31,022 nucleotides of DNA from Oopsacas minuta (Eukaryota; Animalia; Porifera). The translations under genes were made by a program, and so were the position numbers. The first letter of the stretch is position 1. Each line of letters begins with the position of its first letter. The stretch is from positions 1-31,022 of the forward strand of contig JAKMXF010000082.1 of the NCBI GenBank assembly GCA_024704765.1. The letters run 5' to 3'. Below the pieces are notes generated by a model that saw only the letters and a program-made list of their open reading frames with translations, was not told the origin of the DNA and did no database searches. Positions 3 to 30,029 of this stretch are shown here, one piece after another.

Positions 3-2168
3 ATTGTAAACTATGAAATCAATCATATACAAGCAAAGTTAAGCAACACAGCAGAGAGAACCATCTCAACGTTTGTGTTCGCCTATGCATTCAGATCTCA
101 ATGGATAATGAAATCGAAAAAACGTATAGAGAGTAACATTAAACAGGAGGAGAAAAAGCGTAGCCTTCTTCAATACTTTCTACGAAAAATTGAAAATCGT
201 AAAATGATCCGTGGAAAGTGGGATCGTGAGAAAATGAAAGAAAGCGATCATAAAATGTCCCAAAAGTTTGCCTCAGATTTTCTATTGAGTATACAGCGTG
301 GAGTGGAAACTGCTGAACAATCTACTATTGAGGCTCTATTTAAAGGACGAAGTGGAAATTTAACACACACCAGTATTTTACTATCAGCAAATGAGAGAAT
401 CACAACTGAACTGAATAAAGTTGACGAATCGATTGGTACTAACAATTTCATAGTTCAGTATATTTGTAATCGAAACGAAGAATTAAAGAAGTTATTTCAG
501 AAACAATGGGAAATCATAGAAGAAGAATTATACTATAAAGTAGAAAAAAATATGACTCAAAAATTTCTAAAGCAAATAGGAACTCTCAAACAAATACTAA
601 CAGATTTTCTAAGCGATCTGAATACATCTGGCTCCGAGCAAAAAGCTTTTGATTCGGAAAACAATTTTGAGTTGGCTGACTTACAAGCATGTAAAGACAA
701 AGATCCTGAACTACTGATGAAGGCAAGAGAGAGTCCATTCAAGGCAATGGTTTCCTTTTTACGAATGTATCTAGATCCTAAGGTAAGTCCTGTCGAATTT
801 AACAACTATTTTTCAGATACTTTTCAGGTTGATGAAGTCCAAATCAAGAAATCCGATACTTACATATTATGCAAGAAACATACGAATCCAGCAAATCTCC
901 TGGACGAAGACTCTTTCAAAAGGTTAACTAATACCAAGATGTTCAATTCTGAGAATATATTCAATATCTCTGAATATATAGAACAATTTTTATCTGTTCT
1001 AAATTGCTACAAATATGAAGTTACTAAAGCCGACTTTAGAGAGATGACCAAACATATAAGAGAGGAATTCGAGAAAAATGGAATTGGCTGTCCTGCGCAA
1101 TGTCCAAGTTGCGGTAAACTGTGTGAACGAGAAATTCACCCAAACGATGGGAAATGTCAACTTAAGACTGGCCACCAAATATGTTCAATGGGTGGTAAGG
1201 TGTGGAATAACGATGGTAAAAATACTGCAGTATTATTAATGTGTGACGATTACAAGGAAAACACTAAAGTTATTCTACCAGGACAGAGAATGAATTGGGG
1301 AGAATTTAAAGAAAAATGTGAGAATGAATGGGATTGGATGCTCCCCAAGGATGAAAAGTACGTTACCTACCAACAAAACAATCGTGAAAAAATGAAAGAG
1401 ATATGGAACAAATTCGGAAGGGGAATTTTGGAATATCATGAAAAGAGAGGTACAAAAATCAAATATATTCCTTATATATCTTCAGATGAAGTGTACAAAA
1501 CACTACTTTCTATCAAATACTATATCTGCTTTGTAATCGATGGAACCGGATCAATGTGTACGGATATTGAAAGGGCTCGAATTTCTGTTAATCAATTTAT
1601 CAAGAAATATAAAGAACGTGGGAGCGAAACAGAATTTAAAGTAGTGATCTATCGAGATCATTGCGATTCTAACATTATCGAAAAGTTTCCTAATGATAAT
1701 AAATTCACATCACAACACAAAACTATACAAAACTTTCTTGAAACAGTTAAAGCTAATGGTGGAGGAGATTACCCAGAGGCAGTGTTAGATGGTCTAGCGA
1801 CAGCAGCTACTCAATGTGACTGGAAAAACCAATTAGGCGCTAGAAACATATTAATCCACATATATGATGCTCCTCCACATGGAGATTTCCCCAATTACGA
1901 ATCACATTACAGCCGGAGCAATAAAAGTCACTGTTGTTGTTGCAATCATGGTACTTTATGCAATTTTGATTGGGAGCGAGATGTATGGGCTAACATGCAC
2001 AAGTTTCAAATACAATATCATGGAATAACTACAGGTGATAATTTTCCTGGTTTTGAAGCAGAAATGAAGAAAAAATTAGGAGATCTTTGTGGAGAATTTC
2101 AGAAGGTTGGGAAAGAACAAGTTAACGATGCAATTCTTCAGATTTTCATTAAATGCAAGATGGATTAA
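3..2168 (+). CDS. 5'-partial very large inducible GTPase (VLIG/GVIN1/URGCP-like) C-terminal region fused to a C-terminal VWA domain
   Basis: Frame is open from position 3 (IVNYEINHIQAKLSNTAERTISTFVFAYAFR...) to TAA at 2166-2168 with no intron needed. GCPAQCPSCGKLC...H...C...H (from 1086) resembles the Cys/His motif near the GVIN1 C-terminus. VWA motifs: ICFVIDGTGSM (MIDAS DxTxS, 1539-1553), YRDH, GGGDYPEAVLDGL, IYDAPPHG. Family call is by motif recognition, not a database search. Confidence 0.8.
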   Translation: MVNYEINHIQAKLSNTAERTISTFVFAYAFRSQWIMKSKKRIESNIKQEEKKRSLLQYFLRKIENRKMIRGKWDREKMKESDHKMSQKFASDFLLSIQRGVETAEQSTIEALFKGRSGNLTHTSILLSANERITTELNKVDESIGTNNFIVQYICNRNEELKKLFQKQWEIIEEELYYKVEKNMTQKFLKQIGTLKQILTDFLSDLNTSGSEQKAFDSENNFELADLQACKDKDPELLMKARESPFKAMVSFLRMYLDPKVSPVEFNNYFSDTFQVDEVQIKKSDTYILCKKHTNPANLLDEDSFKRLTNTKMFNSENIFNISEYIEQFLSVLNCYKYEVTKADFREMTKHIREEFEKNGIGCPAQCPSCGKLCEREIHPNDGKCQLKTGHQICSMGGKVWNNDGKNTAVLLMCDDYKENTKVILPGQRMNWGEFKEKCENEWDWMLPKDEKYVTYQQNNREKMKEIWNKFGRGILEYHEKRGTKIKYIPYISSDEVYKTLLSIKYYICFVIDGTGSMCTDIERARISVNQFIKKYKERGSETEFKVVIYRDHCDSNIIEKFPNDNKFTSQHKTIQNFLETVKANGGGDYPEAVLDGLATAATQCDWKNQLGARNILIHIYDAPPHGDFPNYESHYSRSNKSHCCCCNHGTLCNFDWERDVWANMHKFQIQYHGITTGDNFPGFEAEMKKKLGDLCGEFQKVGKEQVNDAILQIFIKCKMD

Positions 2169-2609
2169 ATTACTAGTAGGATAGCAGTGTTTTTAGGTTA
2201 GTTAGCATTATCAATTCACCATATTAGGCATGGATGATAACAATCTTTGTATATTCAGTATTTATTTGTTATTTTATTATAACATTGTTTTCTAATGACG
2301 TAATATTTCCTATTATTTATAGTAGACATAAGCCATACTGCAAAATATAGAACACATCTATATTGTTTGAGTGCATTCAACTTCTTGAAAATTAGTTATC
2401 TCAAATACTTACCTTTTTCACTATCATAATGGAAACAGGGAAATACGGTAATCAGATTGGAATTACATTGTCATGCTTTCGGTAATGTCAATACGAGCAG
2501 CATCAAACCAGATAGCAAGATTTGTATAAGTGCTATACATATTTGTGCTATTTTTCAAAGAATAAATTCGTCCGAACATTTTGAATTGTGTCCTAAATTC
2601 AAATACGTA

Positions 2610-2776
2610 CAGTAGAACCCGGCTCAATACGTACTCCAGCTGAGTAGGTACTTTTCAAAACAGATAACCAATTCTTGTGCTAATTGTATAAGAATATTAT
2701 TTGGATTAAGACGTATTTTGGTTACTACGTACTAATGTCTATTTCCAGAGGGATATGTCTTATCCGAGTTCTAATA
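2610..2776. mobile_element. degenerate Tc1/mariner (pogo-like) MITE
   Basis: TA|CAGTAGAACCCGG left end; degenerate right end CCGAGTTCTAATA|TA; non-coding. Confidence 0.4.
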
Positions 2777-3730
2777 TAGTTGTAATCTGCCCAAATTGTT
2801 AATTATTATTAAGGAATAAAATTTGGAAAATCGACACTTTAATCTAGTAAGAGCACCGTAAATCTATTTGGCACTGTACTGTCTATAGACTCTGTACACT
2901 ATAAGAAGTGTAAATTATGTACATAGGCGTAGGAGTAGGTCCACAAAGCCGGACCTTTTTTGGGCAGAATTTGCTTGTCCGGCTTTTTTCCCAATGTTTT
3001 AACTGTACATATATTGGACCATACAACCAAGGTTTGTTTCAATTTCTAGCCGGACCACTTTTTGAAGCAGTGCTACGCCACTTTTGTAGCAACGTAGTAC
3101 AAAAACAAAAATGCAGTCTGCAATAGGCCAATAGCATTGATACACAATGCAAAGATCTCTGAATAAATTGGATACGCATCCGTTTCCTATCCCCTGGAGG
3201 CCTGGAGTACTTATTATCATCATATTCGAGAATCAGAAGGGCTGAGAGCTTTGTTGTTTATCAGATTTTCAAAAGATCGGAATGAAAGGATCGAATTAGG
3301 AATAAAAACAATCGCTATCTCCATTTAGATCCTCCTGTCAAATATGATCAATCTCAATTTCGTTGGTGAAGTACAGTGACTAAACCCAGGATGATGTGTA
3401 CAATTTTCAGGACCCTTCAATGTATTTTCATGGAAATTTAAACGGTAATACGAATTCCGAATAATTATACTTTTCCATTGATCCTTTCCTTGGTAGTTGG
3501 TACGTACTGGTATTTTAATTAATCCTTAACTATATCCAATATCTATATGCTACATATCAGATTACATTCTTTCTTGATAAATTTAGCTGAGGCTGCACTA
3601 TGTATATGATGTGCTATTGGAGCTTTATTCAGAGTATAGATATTTATTCATAAGTATTTTCCTATTTTTCATTATTCGTATTATCGAAGCACGAAGTTTC
3701 GAGCCCATCTACAAAGCCGCAAAGGAGTTA

Positions 3731-3885
3731 AGGGCCGTTCAAACGTTACGTCACGCTAACAAGGGGAGGTGGTAGTCAGCAAATCGGGACAATCCCATTC
3801 TTTTTGTATCACAAAAAGCGTGACACAAGGAGGGAAGGGGCCCAAATTTCTTGAATTTTGCGATATCCAACTTACCAACGGCCCT
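3731..3885. mobile_element. PIF/Harbinger-type MITE (155 bp)
   Basis: Perfect 9-bp TIR AGGGCCGTT (3731-3739) / AACGGCCCT (3877-3885), flanked by identical TTA (3728-3730, 3886-3888); a 3-bp TWA TSD is typical of PIF/Harbinger. Confidence 0.7.
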
Positions 3886-4358
3886 TTATGTATCCTAGTA
3901 AGTGAAGTGTGCTAGTTGGACTAAGATCATATAATGTTACTATCTAATCAATTCTCGACTGCCATTTATGTAAATGATGCAATATTTCTAGGATTTTCTG
4001 AAGTTTACAACCGATTTCTAGATTTGGAGGATCGCGACGGATATCTTCTCAACCAATAGGGCATCTTAATATGAGAGCAGCTGTACTAAAGCATTCATAT
4101 TGTGCTGTATTTATATTTTGGAATTTTTTAGCATTTTGTTACAATTCCGCTAAAATTTTTGCTCTAATTTTCGAATTAGTTTATATGTATTAAAATGAGT
4201 GCTAATTTGTCGACAAGTAGCTGATCACTTTGAAATCCAATGGATCTTGATCTCCATGTAAGAACTATGCCAATTTTCAACGATATATCGATGTCATTCC
4301 TTGTAACACCTACACAACAATTGTGCTTGTATTTATCATGTTCATATTTAGTTAGCAG

Positions 4359-12819: not shown

Positions 12820-12967
12820 TCAACAGTTAAAGAAAAATTTCCTTGCATGTACCTTGAGCCGTGGTTTACTACGATCTCCGTTATAACCTTCATAGATTGG
12901 AGTATAACGGATTGGAGTTATTCTATTCCTTACAAACTGTGTTGAACACTTCCAAACAATATTCAGG
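12820..12967 (-). pseudogene. inverted paralogous fragment of the membrane-protein ORF at about 10507-10640, cut by the N at 12968
   Basis: Reverse complement aligns to 10507-10640; reads LNIVWKCSTQFVRNR/LQSMKVITEIVVNHGSRYMQGNFSLTVEFL* with a 16-nt frameshifting local duplication. Confidence 0.7.
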
Positions 12968-12968
12968 N
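12968..12968. other. single-N scaffold join
   Basis: N base; sequence character changes abruptly across it (pseudogene fragment to open VLIG frame). Confidence 0.8.
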
Positions 12969-12970
12969 CA

Positions 12971-14462
12971 ATTGGAAAGTCATTTTTAGTTGATTTGATA
13001 TTCGATACAGATTTCGTTAAGGGAAGTTCTCAAAATAGTGCCTTTCATTTCAATTCCATTGATATCCAAATGACAAAAAACCTGTTTGGAGAGAGGAATG
13101 ACAAAACAAGTTTAGAATCAACGAAATGGGCATACATAGATTGTCATGGGTATTCTAATTATGATATCATCAAAGTAATTTGTCGACACTTGGACATTGC
13201 TCTAATTCATATCAACCACAAAGATTATCTCAATACCAACAACAAAGGACGGTTGAACAAGGATATTGACCTTCTAACGGAAACTGTAAAACATGTGTAT
13301 TTACTTATTAGAGATTATACAGAATCTGAAGTAAAAATAATTCCGAATACAAGTGGGGATAAATTCCTAACTTCTATTTTCATTCCCAATCTTACCAGTA
13401 AGAACACAAAGATACACTCTGTGACAAAATCATTGAAAAAAATTGGTTATGAGATTTTACATTTGAAGCTTGATCCCTCGAAGAACATCGGAAGCGAGTT
13501 TTTGGAAAAAGTTATGAGCGATCTCAAATATCATTATTTGGAGGAAATTCAAAATGACAAACAATTAATTCAAGTAATAACAAACTACATTGATAAAGTT
13601 GCTCGAACTTCCAATTTAATAGATTTCTCTTTCTTAAACTTCTATCCAATTTTCGTGGAATATATGAGTTCTTATCATAAATGCTCTTATGAGACAGATC
13701 AGAAGATTATCGATCAGCTAAATGCGAAACGAGGGGAACTAGAGGAAAAACTAAAAAATACTAAAATGGGTGATGTTGTCATGCAGTTTAACGAAATATT
13801 AAAACGCAGAAATTCAACACTAATAATATGGAAACTTTCACAAGAATTATCTCTTCTCTCAAAGAAAATCATAAACTGTATGAACCTTACACCCGACAAA
13901 GTTATCGAACAGAAAAATGATAAATACACACTGGAAATCCTCTGGAGGGAATCATTGCTATCCAAAAAATATGGTAATTTAAGCGAAAAAGATAGAAAAA
14001 ATTACGCTCACACATTTGCTGCTAACTTCAGTAATCATGTTGAGAGAGGAGAAGCTTTCGAATTAATCGATGGTGATAATCTCAGGTTTTTTAATCAAGA
14101 TATCAACTCATCATTATATAATTTATACGAGAGACAAAATGCAGAACTTACCAAAATCAATAAAGGTAAAAGTATAAATATGAAACAAGCACCTATCGTA
14201 GTCAGTATTTTTGGGCCACAAAGTTCTGGTAAATCAACTTTGCTAAATTATTGTTTTGGTTGCAAATTCCTAACAAGTGCAGGCAGATGTACGAGGGGAA
14301 TATATGGATCTCTTTCAAGGTTAAGTAGACCAGTTAACAACTCAAGTCATTTCTTAATTCTCGATACAGAAGGTCTTGATGCGATTGAGAGGGGAAATAT
14401 ACAAGACACTTCTCTGATTCATTTTGACAGAACAATGGTTCTGTTCTGTCTATCAGTATCAC
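12971..14462 (+). CDS. partial (both ends gap-truncated) VLIG/GVIN1/URGCP-type GTPase region
   Basis: Uninterrupted frame between two Ns. FELIDGD; PIVVSIFGPQSSGKSTLLN (G1, 14213-14236); AGRCTRG (G2); FLILDTEGL (G3, 14363-14374); FDRTMVLFCL. These match the VLIG-type G domain of the GBP/atlastin-related clade. The ORF-track tail after 14463 is an artefact of the join. Confidence 0.9.
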
Positions 14463-14463
14463 N
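14463..14463. other. single-N scaffold join
   Basis: N base truncating the GTPase domain; followed by non-coding TE-like sequence. Confidence 0.8.
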
Positions 14464-15053
14464 AATAAATTTACAAATGAGAAACTTGAAAATGCGAAAT
14501 TCAGATTCAGCGTATTGTGTTACCCCTGTGTAGCCGTTTAGAGCAAGCCTGTACGTATATTTTGAAATTTGGATAATTTGAGTATTTTGTATTCATAAAA
14601 ACAACAATAAATTTACAAATGATTAATTCAAAAGTGTGAAAATCGGAATCAACATGTTCGATATATTTGGTGAAGTTTTATTGAATTCTAAGTACTTCCT
14701 TGATAAATACGATAAATACATAGTTATATGACAATTTCAAAATTGCATACCGTAAATCCTTTCCTTAACAACGGACAAGCAAACAGACAATCATTGAGAT
14801 TTAATATAGATTCCCATTGTATTTTTGGTGTGGGTTTATATCCAATATGTTAACACCAATAAAAAAGTCTGTCATTTTTCATATGGGTATCTGATATTAT
14901 CTATAGTGTAGGCAGTTTTGTAATTCCCTCAAATTTTTTAGTAGAGGGTGTGTTATAACTTTTTGGAAAGCTTATATTTAAAATTTTTTTCATTTTGTGA
15001 ATTATACGGAGGGAGATGGCAGAAAGGGAGGGTCATGAGTTTCCATAACATCA

Positions 15054-18000
15054 CCTCCCCTCAAAATGATATGGTGACTCTAATCTGAATCTGATTAACC
15101 AAACAGTTTGGCTTCTTCGGGATTCTCGCTTATCGGCGTAAATCTTCACTTTCTCCAGGTTCTTCGGCTACTCTTGTACTGGACTATCCTCCTCATTATT
15201 TTTCGGCATCCGTTAGTATATCGCCATTGACATTTTGAACACTTCTTCCTCCGTCTCTGGAGCAATTTCCACCCTGTTATCAGTAGGTTCAAGGTAGTTA
15301 AGACATACTTTCTCTCCGTTACCCCAGGGCTTGCACCGATTCAGATGCACCCACTTCCTGTACTGGAATCTTGGGGAATTGATTTTGACGTTAGCCCTCT
15401 CCTTTGGATTACCCCCTGAATGGTCCCTTAAAATGTGAATCAAGTGTATTCCACGGTTCTCGTGCCTAACCACCATCCAGTCTTGCGATGGGTGGGCGTG
15501 AATGAGATTTGCTATCGTAAAACTCCTTTGCTCTACCCTGCTTCTTGAATTTTCTTCTCCGATAATTGCCTCCATCTGTCGCCTCCGTATCAATTCTCCA
15601 AGGTGCTCGGGATGATCTGAGGATACGCCCATAAGTGAGTTCCTGTTAACTCACTGTTGTGCTCGAACTGGGAAAAGAGTTACTGATAAATCTGATCTCA
15701 CTGTATGTAACAGAGGCCAGTGAGCTTTGGGCAGACTCCAATCTACCAGCAGGCACCTCATGATCTGCTTGGCCTGCCCGATTGCTCTCTCGGTCGTTCC
15801 GTTCGTTCCTTTCCGGATGGTAGGCTGACGAATGTTTCTTACAGATGTATACACGTCGCACAGTTAGTGGAGAACTTCACCATCCACATTTTTTTCCTGG
15901 TCGCTCATCAACACCCTAGGCACTCCATGTCTGTACACCTATTTCGAGAGGAATGCCTTCTTCATGGACTCCGCCGTTTGATCCCACATCGGGATTTTTT
16001 CGATCCATTTTGAAACGTGTCCACTACTAAGAGGAAGTATTTATAGTCTTCTTAACTCCATGGCAGGGTGGCAAAGTCTAGAGCGACTGTGTGCTCAGAA
16101 CTAATCGGTGGGTTCTTAATCAGTTCTAAGGGTTCTCTAGCCTGCAAGTTAGGCTTGGCCTTCGCACACCATGCAAACCCGCAGTAATTGCTGATATCCT
16201 GATTCATACCAATCCACAAGTAATCGACCTGTTTTTCTCCCCCAAAGTGGTCTGTACTATGTGCTTTCCCCATTATTTCGCTGTGTAATGTTTATGGCGT
16301 CACAATTCTGGCTCCTTTGCATATTAATTCGTCTTCGATATGCTGACCATTAACTTTCTTGTATTGTCCTGCGGTGACTAATACTGTTTCACTGAGCTGA
16401 GCCCTAACTAAGTAGAGTGCGCCATCCGCGTTCTCTGCATTCTTTACTTTCTCTAACCAACCCTTCGCGACTGTAACTACGTAAATAAAGTCCTCGAACG
16501 AACTCTCTTCGTTCACCCCATTGTCGTAATCCATTACTGACGCTATGCTCGAAGGGGCGACTCAGACAGTCTGCCACACAATTGTCTCGTTCCCTGCGAT
16601 ATCTAATTTGACAGTCAAGATCTTCTAATTCCATAATCCACCTTGCAAATATATATCGGGCGTCAGGCTGTCGCCTGAGCCAGGCGACCGAATTGTGATC
16701 TGTCAGCACTATAACCCAGTAGCACCCTTGAGGTAGTCGGACCACTTCCGAGTTGCATCCACTATGGTCATGTTTCTCTTTGCCCGGCGCTATGCTTCAT
16801 CTGGGCCTCGTTCAGTGCCGATGAAAAGTAATTGATTGGTTGTACTACCCCTGTAGTTGGGCCGTGCTGAGAGAGGACCGCTACGGTAGTGAGGTTGCTA
16901 ATCTGCCTCCACTATGAATTGTGGCACTCACCTGGCGTAGCCTAGTACGGCCGGATCGGTAGCCAGGGTTTCTCGGAGCGAGTCAAAAGCAAGTTGGCAA
17001 TCCGTTGTGCAACTCCATGGAGTGTCTGTGTCAGTCTATTCAGTGGTTCGGCCGTCGCGGCTATGTTGCGTATACAGGACCTATAATAATTGATTGTCCC
17101 TAAAAAACGCTGGAGTCCCTTGATCTCGTTGGATCGGGGAAATTCCGAATCTTCGCGACAAGATCTGGATTCGGTTGATGCCCATCTCTTATTACTAAGT
17201 GTACAAGAAACCTTCCCTCCCAATACCTGAAGCTGCACTTCTCTATGCGGAGCTGTATGTTAGCTGGCTTGAATCCATGGAGGACTGTGCGTAGAACGTT
17301 CAAGTGTTTCCTAAAACTCCTTGAGTACACCAGGCAGTCATCGATAAATGACTCTGTATTTGGGGCACTCGCAAGGGCTTGATCCATGACACATTGATAA
17401 GTGACCGGTGCATTACACAGCCCAAAGGGCATTACTAACATTTCGAAATGGACTCGATAAGTGCTGAAAGCAGTCTTTTCAATGTCTTCCTTACGCACTG
17501 GTTCGCACCTGTAGGGGTCCCTGAAAGGTTGTCGACCTTCCACGCTATCTTTTCGCTCCTGCTTGTCCGCGCCCGAACTCATAAGTATTCACTCCTTGTT
17601 CCTCGTTGTTTTCTTCGCTCGTCTCCATACTGAGAACTCCGGGCTTTTCCTTTTCCGTTTCAAATGTCTTTGAAGCATTAATTACCGAAACCTTATCAAA
17701 GTAGCGATATCCCAAGTCGGTTGCTGTCCGTTAACCAATCTCTGACTTTGACCAAGAGTTCTCTGCCAGTTACCTCCGTTACTTCCTCTCTGCCGGTGAT
17801 CCATGATTTGGCCTTGCCCTGGACTTCCTTCTGAAGTTGTGCAGTTGCGTTCACGCATGCAGTTCTAAGGGGGTAGCTTGCTCTCTTGGCTTGTTTATAC
17901 ATTGCGGCGAGAAAGTCGTCCACTTGTTCTCCCTGCCGCCATGACATCGCGTGGAATCTTTTAGTTGCTTCGTATTCGTCCACTGGAGGGTCGAGTGGTT

Positions 18001-24479: not shown

Positions 24480-25229
24480 TTAATTATCTTCAGTTTTGAG
24501 ATCACTCGGCATTAGGAAGTATATCAGGGATAGGATGTTAAGTCCAATCATAAGATTTGCTAGTCCGTAACCGCGGAACAGAATAGCCAGAGCAAGTATT
24601 ACTAGATTACAGACAATTACTTGAAGCTGGAATTGTAGTTGAAACATTTTCAGAGACTTATAGGCATCACGTAGGACTGAACTCGGTTCGATTTGTTGGT
24701 TACGACAGAGCCTGATAAAACCAGGAATTAGCATCACGACAACTGACAATATTCCTAGCAGCAACCAAGCTGATACAGAGCTGGTTAGCTCTGATAAGAT
24801 AATCAAGGTTATCAAGACCATTGAGTAGAATTTGAAAGGATTTACAATTCTTACTGAATAAAAGAAATCAACAGTATGCTCTGCCAGTATATTTAAGGAT
24901 GTTAATTCTCGTGACACTACTTCTGCAAAGTATTTATCTTCTGTATCCGAGCGTGGAGATAGTGCATTCACCCATCCGTGCTTCTTCAATGCGAAATCTA
25001 CTCCAGTAGCAACTATAATTGCTATACCGCATATACTGATGACAGAGAGATCGTATACATAAAGGGTTAGGAACAATATCGTGACTAGGCCAATCAGGGC
25101 CGCTCCGAACGCTTCTGATTTCGGTTCAAACGTTAGAGATTTCCACATTTTTACTAGTACTCGTCTGTGTGGGTATAAGACAGATGCTAACATCCCCTGT
25201 CGGGTCTGGAAGTCAGTGTCTTGTGACAT
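24480..25229 (-). CDS. ARL6IP1: ARL6IP1-like reticulon-homology ER-shaping protein, intronless, 249 aa
   Basis: Size and spacing of two hydrophobic hairpins and motifs (LTFE..A.IG.V..LFL..Y..D.SV.S; VDF; P.KFY..LI.L; LL..L.V..L.PG) recall ARL6IP1. It carries an extra hydrophobic C-terminal segment. Recognised from memory, not aligned. Confidence 0.7.
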   Translation of the reverse strand: MSQDTDFQTRQGMLASVLYPHRRVLVKMWKSLTFEPKSEAFGAALIGLVTILFLTLYVYDLSVISICGIAIIVATGVDFALKKHGWVNALSPRSDTEDKYFAEVVSRELTSLNILAEHTVDFFYSVRIVNPFKFYSMVLITLIILSELTSSVSAWLLLGILSVVVMLIPGFIRLCRNQQIEPSSVLRDAYKSLKMFQLQFQLQVIVCNLVILALAILFRGYGLANLMIGLNILSLIYFLMPSDLKTEDN

Positions 25230-25921: not shown

Positions 25922-28900
25922 TTAGAAGAAATCGATAAAGTCATCTTGTTCAAAGTTTGGACAAACAGAATCTAGTTCCATTTTGGTGAGGAAAAAGCTT
26001 GGCTTAGATTCATTAAATTTAGCAGGAATTATACTTTGTTTTATTGGAATGTTCGTTAAGTTATTGGGTTGCTTCTCGTTTTGAAAAGTATTTTCTATTT
26101 CAATCAATTTCTTCCTTTTACATCGATAGAAATCGTCTTCATTTTCATCTGATAAAGAATTATTTGTACGCGAATTTAACTTGGAATAATCAGCTGATCT
26201 CTGAATTGGCTCCACAATACAAGTAGGAATATGTTTAGACTTGTGTAACTGTTCAATATCTTCCGTTGAATCACAAAAAGGTTTGGGTATATTTCTTGGC
26301 GGTATGGGAGTGCCATTTAAGTCACCTTCAATATCAAAATCCTCTGGGAAAAAATCGAAATAGTTTTCATTATCTAATTCAGCATTATTCTCCAAAAATT
26401 TCGGACTAGGTAATTCATATATAGTGTTATCTGTGTGGGATTTGTACTGAGTAGGTTGGTAGGCGAATTCCTGCAGAGCGCCTGCACTCTGTTTCAACCT
26501 CATACTAAATCCAGTAGCGGGGAGTAAATCCTGTTTGTTATTTACTTCTTCCATAAATGTATTCATCCTACTACTCCTACTGTTTCTATAAGGATAGGAA
26601 TCTTCTCTCTTTGCTTTATTGCTATCTCTACATACATTCGTAATATCATTCTTACAGCATGTGTGTCCGCACAGCTGTTTATCATAACATCTGTGACTAC
26701 ATGCATTCTCCTTTGAATATAAATTCTGTTTTGTTGGAGAATCTGTATAGTACGACTGGCCTAGATCAAAGTTTTGTGACGCACCTACTTTTATTGTTGA
26801 TGCATTTTGTTGTTGTTGTTGTTGCTGTTGATTAGGTACTCTTATAGGAAGCAGGAATTTAGGTGTAAATATTCGGTTAATATCTAATCCAACAAATTTT
26901 AAAGATTTCAAATGAATTTTAAGAGATATTTTGTGATCATTTTGAAATGGAACTTTTATAAAATATGAAACATTCTTTTCAGGTTTTTGCATCACAAACG
27001 AATCAGTAATTCTATACTTAGCAAATATTCTACTATCAGCTGGGTCTCCTATGATTAGTAAACAGCTGTGAGGTGAATGAGACTTTTTGTTTGTGTTTAC
27101 TAAATCTAAACTGTTATTCAGACGTAGTACAATATCAATCATAGCAAATTCTCTATTAGGAGGTAGTCTCTGTGAAATATCAAGTGAATAGTTGGGCAGA
27201 GAAGATACAGAATTGATTACATGTGTTCCAAATGGTGGATGTCTGTTAGTAATCAATTCTAGCTGTCTAGGATTAGTCTCAGATATTTTATTGAAAGTTG
27301 TGAGTCCAGCTTGAACGAGGCAATTAGAAATAGTAGGACCAACCTTCTCAAGCTGTTTAGACACGAAATGTGAATCTAACCATAATTTAGCGTTAATACA
27401 CTGATGTAAGCAAGCAGAATGGTGAATTGCAGAGAAATCCTCTCGTAACAATTGTATTTCTAACAAACACCTAGACACTCTATAAGCATTACGAAATATC
27501 CTCTGTACATCTTGGGTTAGTGTAAAGTCCTGGAAAGGAATACAGCCTAGTGTAGCTTGTATCAAACAGTTAACCTTCATGGCCGTCGTCTTAATCTTAC
27601 CTTTCATTGGATGACGTATTGTAGTTCTCTGTTTATCTCTGTTTAAACTATTTAACACTTTCTTCTCACTGATACGTAATTTTACGTCATAAAATTCTTG
27701 TAATTCTGAAATATCTAAAAGTGTATCGCCTAGATTTTGCGTGCGTAGGTTGAGTGAGATTAGTTTTTTCATTGTAGGGAATGATAAACAGAACCTGGCC
27801 ATCAATCTACCAAGGGGGGTAGGTGTGATAAACCGCGAGTTTGGATTCAATTTTATCAGTTCAGCTTCATTTAATAACTGCAAATCTTTCAAACACATTT
27901 CTTGTAATTTCTTATCCAAATAATCTTCACTTACGAGAGTATTATCCTCTCCTAGGTAATGAGATGGGTTTCTTCTAACACGAACATATAGAAATGTACT
28001 TTTAATCCATTTTAGAGCTACAATAACTTCTTCAATAGTCCCTAATACTACTTCAGCATTAAGATGCTCTATCAGATTTTGGTGTAGATAGCTCTCTACT
28101 GTTTGCAAGCCAGATAGAAATGTCTCATATTTGCTACACGTCTCATTACGCGTCATGATGACAGCTGTAGCATGTGTGTCGAACTGGGGTCTACCAGCTC
28201 TCCCTACCATCTGTAGCACTTGAGGTTCCGAGTATTCTCTATAAACATAAAATATCGATTATCCATAGTACTGTGTATGTACTACGGGTATAACATCTAA
28301 TAAGAATAGTATTCAAACTTGCCTCGGATACCACTAGTGGGTTCTAGCAATTCATACCTTGGACGGGATGGACATTAGTATTATAAGCAACGAGATTACC
28401 CACAACGCCAAATATTATATTGTGACGCATGGCGCACTCGAAGGAGTGTTTTGTAGAATTGAAACGTCAATCCAAATTTCTGAAAATGACAACTATATGA
28501 ACCAGCAAAAACTTCAATTGAAATGCAGTAATCTAAAATATATTAAGCTCACCGGCGTCGCAATGATAAGTGAGAGGGATAATTCAGCTCAAATGGCCAT
28601 ATAACTAAATTGTACAAGTAACTGTAAAAGTAGAGGGGCTAAAGCCCCCCTGTTCCAATGTCTTTGAATACATCATATCTACGTAGCACTCCCTTGACTT
28701 GGATGCGAAACGTCACGTTTGAGATACCTGATACCTCTAATTAATGGCATACACAACTAACACAATAAATCCTGTAAATATTTGGTGTGTAAATTTACCT
28801 GAAAGCTCCCTCCACATACTGTTGAGTAGACTTGATAATAACAAGATGAGCTGGTAGATTTACTCCCATAGCTAGAGTACTGGTTGAGAACAGAACAGGC

Positions 28901-30029
28901 AGACAACCTCTTACAAAAGCAGATTCAACTGTCCTTCTATCTTCTGTGTATAATCCTGCGTGATGGAAAGCTATTCCTACGCTAAATAACTCTCTTAACT
29001 TACTGTCCTTCAAGAATAGAGCCTGTTGCTCTAAACTCCTTCTAGACTCTATACTCATTCCCAGGCCATCTTTAGCAAGGACGCAGGCAGCTTGTTGAGT
29101 ACCTTTACGTGTAGAGCAGAATATAAGAGTTGGCTTACCCTCTGAGTAAGATTGTATTACAGAACGTAGTTTATAAGAAAGAGAAATATCAAATTTGAAC
29201 TCAGACATATCTCTAGAAGAGTAAGGTAACACAATACGTGTCAGAGGAACAGGTCTCTGTGACTCATCCACCCTTACTACCTTAGCCCCCTCTCCAAACC
29301 ATTCAGCTATATCTTCACAGTTCGGTATAGTAGCTGAAGCAGCTACTAGTCTAATACCCGGGTTATTAATATTAGAATTGAGTGAAGAAGAATGTATTGT
29401 CTTCATACGTGATATCACTGCTTCTATAGTAGGCCCTCTGTGTGGATCATTCAGTAGATGTATTTCATCAACTAAGAATAGACGGATCTGCTCAACCAGT
29501 GATCTATTGTCCTTCCATTTCCTAGTCATAGAGTCCCATTTCTCTGGGGTGGTTAGAATCAGCTGTACATCTTTCAAGATAAAGAAATCATCTGACTCAG
29601 AGTCACCTGTCAACTCCAGACAGCTGATATTGAAAGGTGACAATTTCTGGGACCAATCTTGAAATCTCTCAGAGCACAGAGCTTTTATAGGTGCCATATA
29701 CACACACTTGGTTGTAGGTGGGTGTGAGACATTCATACTCTCCTGTAACAGCCATCTTACAATAGCCAATTCAAACACGCCTGTCTTACCAGATCCTGTG
29801 GGAGCACTGATCACTAGATTAGCTTCTGAGTAGAGGAGAGGATCAAATGATAGGGATTGTACTAAGTTGAAGTATGGAAATGTGAAAATACTATTATATG
29901 GAGATACTATCTCTGATACAGGTCGGAGTTGTGTGTGTCTCTGTATGTGAGGATGTAAGGGGCTGGGATAAGAGAATGGTATTCTGTGAGTGGATATAGG
30001 AGATACTGAGTTATTGGATCCAACAGAGT
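25922..30029 (-). CDS. HFM1: ATP-dependent 3'-5' DNA helicase HFM1/MER3 (Ski2-like SF2, Sec63 domain); first exon not resolved
   Basis: Exons 30029-28799 and 28238-25922, joined by a 560-bp phase-2 GT-AG intron giving ...GAFR/EYSEPQVLQMVGRAGRPQFD. Motifs: FPYFN.VQS, APTGSGKT, DEIH, SATIPN, FHHAGL, STSTLAMGVNLPA, GRAGRPQFD, Sec63 region, C-terminal CSHRCYDKQLCGHTCCK typical of HFM1. The upstream exon starts at acceptor TTCTCTTAG (phase 1). Confidence 0.93.
26807..26830 (-). repeat. (CAA)n microsatellite encoding poly-Q8 in HFM1
   Basis: Eight CAA/CAG codons. Confidence 0.85.

Follow-up and report, generated by a model that had tools for sequence, protein, structure and literature searches.

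The window analysed here, a stretch of 31,022 nucleotides from the glass sponge Oopsacas minuta (G000:C82:1-31022; contig JAKMXF010000082.1 of assembly GCA_024704765.1), opens with a reading frame at positions 3 to 2168 which, judged by sequence comparison, is the C-terminal third of a giant GTPase of the VLIG family that carries a von Willebrand factor A (VWA) domain as a tail. The frame is open from base 3 over 721 codons and ends at a TAA (2166-2168) on the forward strand; base 1 of the window is also the start of the scaffold. The architecture and the assignment to the VLIG family are held with high confidence, and we give a probability of roughly 0.6 to the reading as a whole, in which proteins of this architecture would also build a GTP-driven coat in immune defence. 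The coat mechanism taken by itself, which is drawn by analogy, falls somewhat short of even odds.

The preliminary description of this stretch reported one uninterrupted frame with the motifs DGTGS, YRDH, GGGDYPE and DAPPHG, and all four motifs lie where it placed them (Table 1). According to Pfam, VWA is the sole domain recognised in the 721-residue protein: the VWA_4 model (PF25106) matches with an E-value of 6.4e-12 and 45.8 bits (cut-off 27), and the VWA_2 and VWA models stay below their cut-offs. An AlphaFold2 model of residues 340-721, built on 39 paralogs, shows predicted local distance difference test (pLDDT) values of 70-93 over the VWA part, and Foldseek matched this model to integrin beta I-like domains, the VWA domain of CMG2 and ITIH1, with E-values of 1e-7 to 3e-9. 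The residues D513, T515, S517, D589 and D622, which are of the metal ion-dependent adhesion site (MIDAS) type, are all present. Profile, fold and residues thus agree with the MIDAS-intact VWA domain that had been proposed, and metal binding is predicted. Across the family, all five positions are retained in 70 of the 88 tails that could be aligned. A sub-clade of 18 paralogs (including P0066, P0068 and P0111) keeps the region of the VWA fold but no longer has the MIDAS serine or either of the two aspartates, and three of four clustered cysteines are also missing; these MIDAS-dead paralogs may be regulators or decoys. A feature search of the ESM Atlas gave low scores only (up to 0.76), all to VWA_4 clusters, and is taken as a lead only.

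Residues 1-505 of the protein gave no match in Pfam, PDB-sequence, PADLOC or NCBIfam scans. Matches of the 721-residue protein to short-chain dehydrogenase/reductase enzymes among PDB sequences (E 0.06) were rejected as chance. The first part of the protein can be read from an intact paralog on scaffold C321 (L012:474-7253, reverse strand), which is one unbroken intronless frame of 2,260 amino acids with a URGCP_GTPase domain (PF25683, 89.6 bits, cut-off 55) at residues 845-1026 and VWA_4 at residues 2047-2145. The window protein is collinear with residues 1534-2259 of this paralog from its first to its last residue, with 56% identity over 721 amino acids, and the part before the VWA domain aligns to residues 1534-2048.

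We compared the profile of 36 VWA-type proteins with that of nine canonical VLIG frames of O. minuta using hhalign. Residues 479-2048 of the VWA type match residues 160-1610 of the 1,611 canonical residues (probability 99.9, E 7.5e-33, 1,288 columns), and the window protein covers about the last 515 residues of this match. The match stops at the canonical C-terminus, with residue 1610 of 1611 opposite residue 2048 of the paralog, exactly at the first strand of the VWA domain; therefore, at the level of aligned sequence, the sub-family has the VLIG body in full and carries the VWA domain as an extension beyond the usual C-terminus. The VLIG-like C-terminal region postulated at the outset, which Pfam does not match, is thus supported by its collinearity with a paralog that has a G domain and by the alignment of that region to canonical VLIG proteins (hhalign 99.9%), and the postulated in-frame fusion to a VWA domain is borne out by the canonical proteins of the same genome, which end where the VWA domain starts.

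The VWA type shares with VLIG-1, GVIN1 and URGCP a G domain that matches URGCP_GTPase above the cut-off, both in the paralog and in a second piece of the window, as well as an intronless, multi-copy gene and a body collinear with the canonical VLIG proteins of its own genome. It differs from them in the extra C-terminal VWA domain of about 215 residues and in PF25496, the URGCP N-terminal domain. This domain reaches 187 bits in a canonical VLIG protein of O. minuta, where PF25683 reaches 405 bits, and was not found by Pfam in the intact VWA-type paralog; PF25496 marks the URGCP/GVIN core group and therefore the VWA type is a divergent branch. The match of the VWA type to PF25683 is also partial and much weaker (67-100 bits versus 340-409). 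The sub-family has a dynamin-superfamily G domain with G1 to G3 intact, and the VWA-type proteins show a degenerate P-loop module upstream of this active G domain (residues 488-516 of L012), a feature reminiscent of the pair of LG domains in the model of human GVIN1. Some paralogs (P0024 and P0034) show many helix-turn-helix Pfam matches at the N-terminus. No signal peptide or transmembrane segment was found in the paralogs, and the protein of the window gene is predicted to be cytosolic.

Between the helical part and the VWA domain, the protein contains a motif whose cysteines and histidine are invariant in 39 paralogs. The same motif is found at residues ~1430-1500 of the nine canonical VLIG frames, and hhalign pairs the cysteine motifs of the two profiles with top confidence. 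The AlphaFold2 model is poor over this cysteine-rich part (pLDDT <50). It is probably a zinc-binding module common to canonical VLIG proteins, with both fold and zinc binding deduced from the motif.

The body of the sub-family thus has a first G-like module that is degenerate, then a G domain that looks active, an extended helical stretch and the zinc-type Cys/His motif. By analogy with GBPs and with human GVIN1, a mechanism can be proposed for such proteins. Contacts between G domains, driven by GTP, would assemble the protein into an oligomer or a coat on its target, for instance a microbe, a membrane or a particle, and the fast-diverging helical body would supply the target specificity. At the conserved VWA tail, the MIDAS with its bound Mg2+ would clamp an acidic residue of a constant partner; candidates are a cofactor, an adjacent subunit of the assembly or an effector that acts downstream. 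The coupling of an NTP-driven machine to a MIDAS that holds a partner by an acidic residue is known from midasin/Rea1 and from MoxR-VWA systems; however, these use AAA+ ATPases and the sponge protein is a dynamin-superfamily GTPase, so that the analogy is functional only. The suggestion of a pairing of the MoxR-vWA conflict-system type did not hold up: no resemblance was seen to MoxR-vWA or to other prokaryotic defence models, since PADLOC gave nothing better than E 0.003, NCBIfam gave no match and no AAA domain was found. A function of VLIG/GVIN proteins has only just been found: human GVIN1 coats Burkholderia thailandensis, for which it needs interferon-induced cofactors (2025 preprint, bioRxiv 10.1101/2025.03.24.645074, and an eLife paper). 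An immune role of the VWA-tailed VLIG GTPases is suggested by this analogy.

The O. minuta genome has been described with 365 scaffolds, ~61 Mb and 36% G+C (PMC10280926), and the assembly used here contains 61,460,524 bases in 365 contigs. A DNA search found about ten related loci in it. There are about 12 canonical VLIG genes of ~1,600 amino acids each, with PF25683 at 314-409 bits, and about nine loci with PF25683 at 67-100 bits, which are the loci with VWA tails. Three VWA-type loci are intact (on C321, C310 and C49) and the other six or so are split into several frames; the copy pattern of the family is multi-copy, of the birth-and-death kind. Two paralogs are already in NCBI, P0043 (2,234 amino acids) and P0040 (2,206 amino acids), one of them under the name "Interferon-induced very large GTPase 1". 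Because sponges, to our knowledge, have no interferon system, in which they differ from the setting of VLIG-1 and GVIN1, 'interferon-induced' is an inherited name only. In addition, the NCBI protein P0100 of scaffold C312, named 'Formin-like protein' (2,436 amino acids), shows URGCP_GTPase/GBP matches together with formin FH2/FH3; in this gene model, a formin gene and the broken VLIG locus beside it have probably been joined into one. Searches with the C321 paralog found 90 relatives in databases for the C-terminal part and at least 644 for the G domain. Most of them come from the ENA assembly ERZ25071281 (for example L016:3001-9774), which contains dozens of intact frames of 2,200-2,400 amino acids; we take its source to be a further sponge, in which the family has expanded very strongly.

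Several observations on the window copy weigh against a working gene at this locus, and the strongest alternative, for which we see a minor but real chance, holds that this copy no longer functions and is a relic (a gene fragment or a pseudogene) of a tandem cluster in decay; nothing would be made from this locus, although the architecture of the family is real. The frame begins at the scaffold edge, and as it is cut there, a G domain further upstream in the same frame cannot be read from the assembly. A 5.5-kb scaffold, C202, starts at the same base as the window and carries the same gene tail (L020:1-952); in this copy nucleotides 242-1508 (1,267 bp) are gone and 22 other letters stand instead, which leaves the frame open over 306 amino acids (NCBI P0131). 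Identity between the two copies is 99% over the first 241 nucleotides and 93% in the VWA domain, and both the long and the deleted form occur in contigs from four runs of one sample. In the VWA region the two copies differ at 43 nucleotides and 25 amino acids, and the ratio of nonsynonymous to synonymous substitution rates (dN/dS) comes to 0.69, a value that points to weak constraint and is based on only these 43 differences. Furthermore, most sister loci are broken, as described above, and the window also contains a retroelement and other transposon-like sequence. On the other side, 721 codons are free of stops and every MIDAS and cysteine position is intact, and the functional motifs are all intact in both the window and the C202 copies. 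Read contigs overrun base 1 of the window by 247-442 nucleotides upstream, and therefore the truncation is a property of the assembly and not necessarily of the gene.

The assembly of the region is poor, as single n's at scaffold joins show (12968, 14463, 19258 and 22914). The first two bracket the second VLIG piece of the window, which is therefore a short contig set into the scaffold. This piece matches URGCP_GTPase with 72.1 bits according to Pfam, has its P-loop and DTEG intact, and may be part of the same gene or a tandem neighbour. The apparent truncations of VLIG sequence in the window may be assembly artefacts, and the window copy may belong to a tandem cluster in which it is decaying or has been mis-scaffolded. 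A further point against a relic comes from the contig depth of run X4, which is ~1,000-3,900 over the frame and 87 behind nucleotide 2161 (10-40 times more over the frame), with runs X1-X3 flat. This pattern may be transcription and X4 may be an RNA library, although depth is a poor measure and the kind of X4 is not on record; the stretch of the frame was not found in any RNA run on record. In C202, a stretch of about 2.5 kb (L020:1448-3976) is open in one forward and two reverse frames at once, which suggests stop-poor repetitive or low-complexity sequence.

The description had proposed the VWA domain as a sensor or an adaptor, and it is the adaptor that fits the conservation within the family. 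Mean pairwise identity among 36 paralogs is 0.80 in the G domain, 0.69 in the Cys motif and 0.61 in the VWA domain, in comparison with 0.44 at the N-terminus and 0.42-0.48 in the helical regions (0.42 for the segment that corresponds to residues 1-361). By these figures, the role of a constant adaptor seems to suit the VWA domain better than that of a variable sensor. A tail that acts as a variable pathogen sensor and binds microbial ligands directly via its MIDAS is accordingly the weaker half of that proposal, and we regard it as improbable. In integrins and anthrax-toxin receptors, VWA domains of the MIDAS type bind a variety of ligands, the top Foldseek matches are ligand-binding domains of this kind (integrin beta I-like and CMG2), and the dN/dS in relation to the C202 copy is fairly high; however, a variable sensor does not agree with a VWA domain better conserved than the helical body or the N-terminus, nor with a sub-clade that lost the MIDAS altogether and kept the domain. 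That the family consists of housekeeping GTPases for membrane remodelling or trafficking, of the atlastin/Sey1/RHD3 kind, with the VWA domain as a cargo or tether adaptor like the VWA-like trunk of Sec23/24, is very unlikely: the G domain also matches RHD3_GTPase (43 bits) and Dynamin_N and an Anaeramoeba homologue bears an automatic name from Sey1, but URGCP_GTPase is the best model for the G domain, the body is collinear with VLIG proteins over its whole length, no transmembrane segment was found where atlastin/Sey1 have two, and copy numbers that are massive and lineage-specific, together with pseudogenes and with helical regions that evolve fast, are in keeping with a conflict gene family.

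An exhaustive HMMER search with the VWA domain alone as query gave 5,332 matches, among them giants of ~1,700-2,600 amino acids with a C-terminal VWA domain. According to Pfam, several of these carry G domains of the GBP/URGCP/RHD3 type or MMR_HSR1. Giants with a G domain and a C-terminal VWA_4 for which a species is named are those of Anaeramoeba flamelloides ('protein sey1'), Tetrahymena malaccensis and Paramecium primaurelia, and in the bdelloid rotifers Adineta steineri, Rotaria magnacalcarata and R. socialis; the UniRef name of several such giants is 'VLIG-type G domain-containing protein'. The same architecture thus occurs in Adineta, Rotaria, Paramecium, Tetrahymena and Anaeramoeba, and the protein is not lineage-specific as first supposed. 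Nor is the architecture new to databases, where it is present with machine annotation; it does appear to be new to the literature, since we found no description of the fusion in publications on VLIG or GVIN with VWA, or on sponges or invertebrates. Neither glass-sponge genome paper mentions VLIG-type GTPases, and we know of no study of non-vertebrate relatives of VLIG/GVIN GTPases. A VLIG-family GTPase with an appended VWA domain is therefore real and unstudied, and is distributed more broadly than the preliminary description held.

The giants of rotifers, ciliates and Anaeramoeba resemble the sponge type in a GBP/VLIG-like G domain in the middle of the protein, in Cys/His-rich CPxC motifs and in a terminal VWA_4 domain with the same motifs (DxTGS, YRDH, GGGDxPE and DAPPHG). 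They differ in the sequence after DAPPHG, which is GCPCG in the rotifer and protist giants and CCCCNHG in the sponge. In profile comparisons with the sponge type, the G core (97-98%) and the VWA domain (99%) align and the Cys motif aligns weakly; however, the helical bodies do not. The DAPPHG...GCPCG signature is general to the VWA_4 subtype and includes the VIT-VWA proteins of Polyangia bacteria, and DxTGS, GGGDxPE and DAPPHG are widespread in microbial and protist proteins, as had been anticipated for this VWA subtype. The Polyangia VIT-VWA proteins and the amoebozoan proteins with the automatic name 'vwkA' show the same MIDAS variant and signature motifs as the window; however, proteins of these groups pair VWA_4 with VIT, FHA, Ras-like or other modules and have no VLIG body. 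Likewise, Pfam found no alpha-kinase domain in the window frame or the full-length paralog, and only the VWA subtype is common with the VwkA type. For VWA_4 (PF25106), one UniRef name reads 'Hemicentin-1-like von Willebrand factor ...'.

A tree of 143 VWA sequences places the sponge clade (support 100) on an unresolved polytomy. In a tree of 54 sequences made with a quick method, the sponge sequences join the rotifer-type clade with a value of 96 in the SH-like approximate likelihood ratio test (SH-aLRT), a grouping made weak by the long sponge branch, and a branch (83) has all GTPase-linked VWA domains on the same side. The fusion may be single and ancient, or it may have arisen repeatedly.

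Defence by large GTPases would seem to be older than animals, given that these proteins occur in protists as well as in sponges and rotifers. The VWA-tailed VLIG-type GTPases of sponges, rotifers, ciliates and metamonads might further be one ancient class of cell-autonomous defence, lost in vertebrates, in which a GTP-driven coat is anchored or wired via a Mg2+-MIDAS clamp; we think this rather unlikely. If it were true, the hundreds of paralogs that one sponge assembly contains would be the innate-immune repertoire of an animal without interferon. Whatever their history, the MIDAS-intact protein-binding domain at the C-terminal end of these proteins gives experiments a way to ask what coats of this kind bind to. 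The window copy, being incomplete, is of limited value for this, and the intact paralog on scaffold C321 is better suited to study.

Table 1. Features of the VLIG-related sequence in the window; nt, nucleotide positions in the window; aa, residues of the 721-residue protein unless stated otherwise.
Feature	Residues (aa)	Position (nt)	Strand	Evidence or remark
5'-truncated open reading frame, 721 codons and TAA		3-2168	+	56% identity to intact paralog; scaffold edge
Helical segment of VLIG body	1-361	3-1085	+	Inside hhalign match to canonical VLIG; most variable part among paralogs
Cys/His-rich motif, C-x3-CPxC-x3-C ... C ... H	362-398	1086-1196	+	Probable zinc-binding module
Linker	399-505	1197-1517	+	Counterpart of the C-terminal ~120 residues in canonical VLIG (hhalign)
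VWA domain	506-721	1518-2165	+	Pfam VWA_4, AlphaFold2 and Foldseek, motifs
DGTGS	513-517	1539-1553	+	VWA motif
YRDH	550-553	1650-1661	+	VWA motif
GGGDYPE	586-592	1758-1778	+	VWA motif
DAPPHG	622-627	1866-1883	+	VWA motif
CCCCNHG cluster	644-650	1932-1952	+	Within VWA domain, after DAPPHG
VLIG G-domain piece		12962-14488	+	tblastn 54% identity, E 1e-152; equals paralog aa 493-996

Contamination or a horizontal origin was considered and rejected: the G+C content of the frame is like that of the rest of the window, the scaffold carries ordinary eukaryotic genes, and many paralogs are found across large scaffolds. Adjoining the VLIG G-domain piece is a G+C-rich block at 15000-18000 on the reverse strand (47% versus ~34%) with a reverse-transcriptase frame (RVT_1, E 5e-13, at 17100-17582), which is a retroelement. 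Large frames at 25922-29814 on the reverse strand, with Sec63/Brl, SNRNP200-type winged-helix and DEAD/Helicase_C domains, are a Brr2/ASCC3-like helicase gene, an ordinary host gene, and a weak reticulon-like frame is located at 24480-25229 on the same strand.

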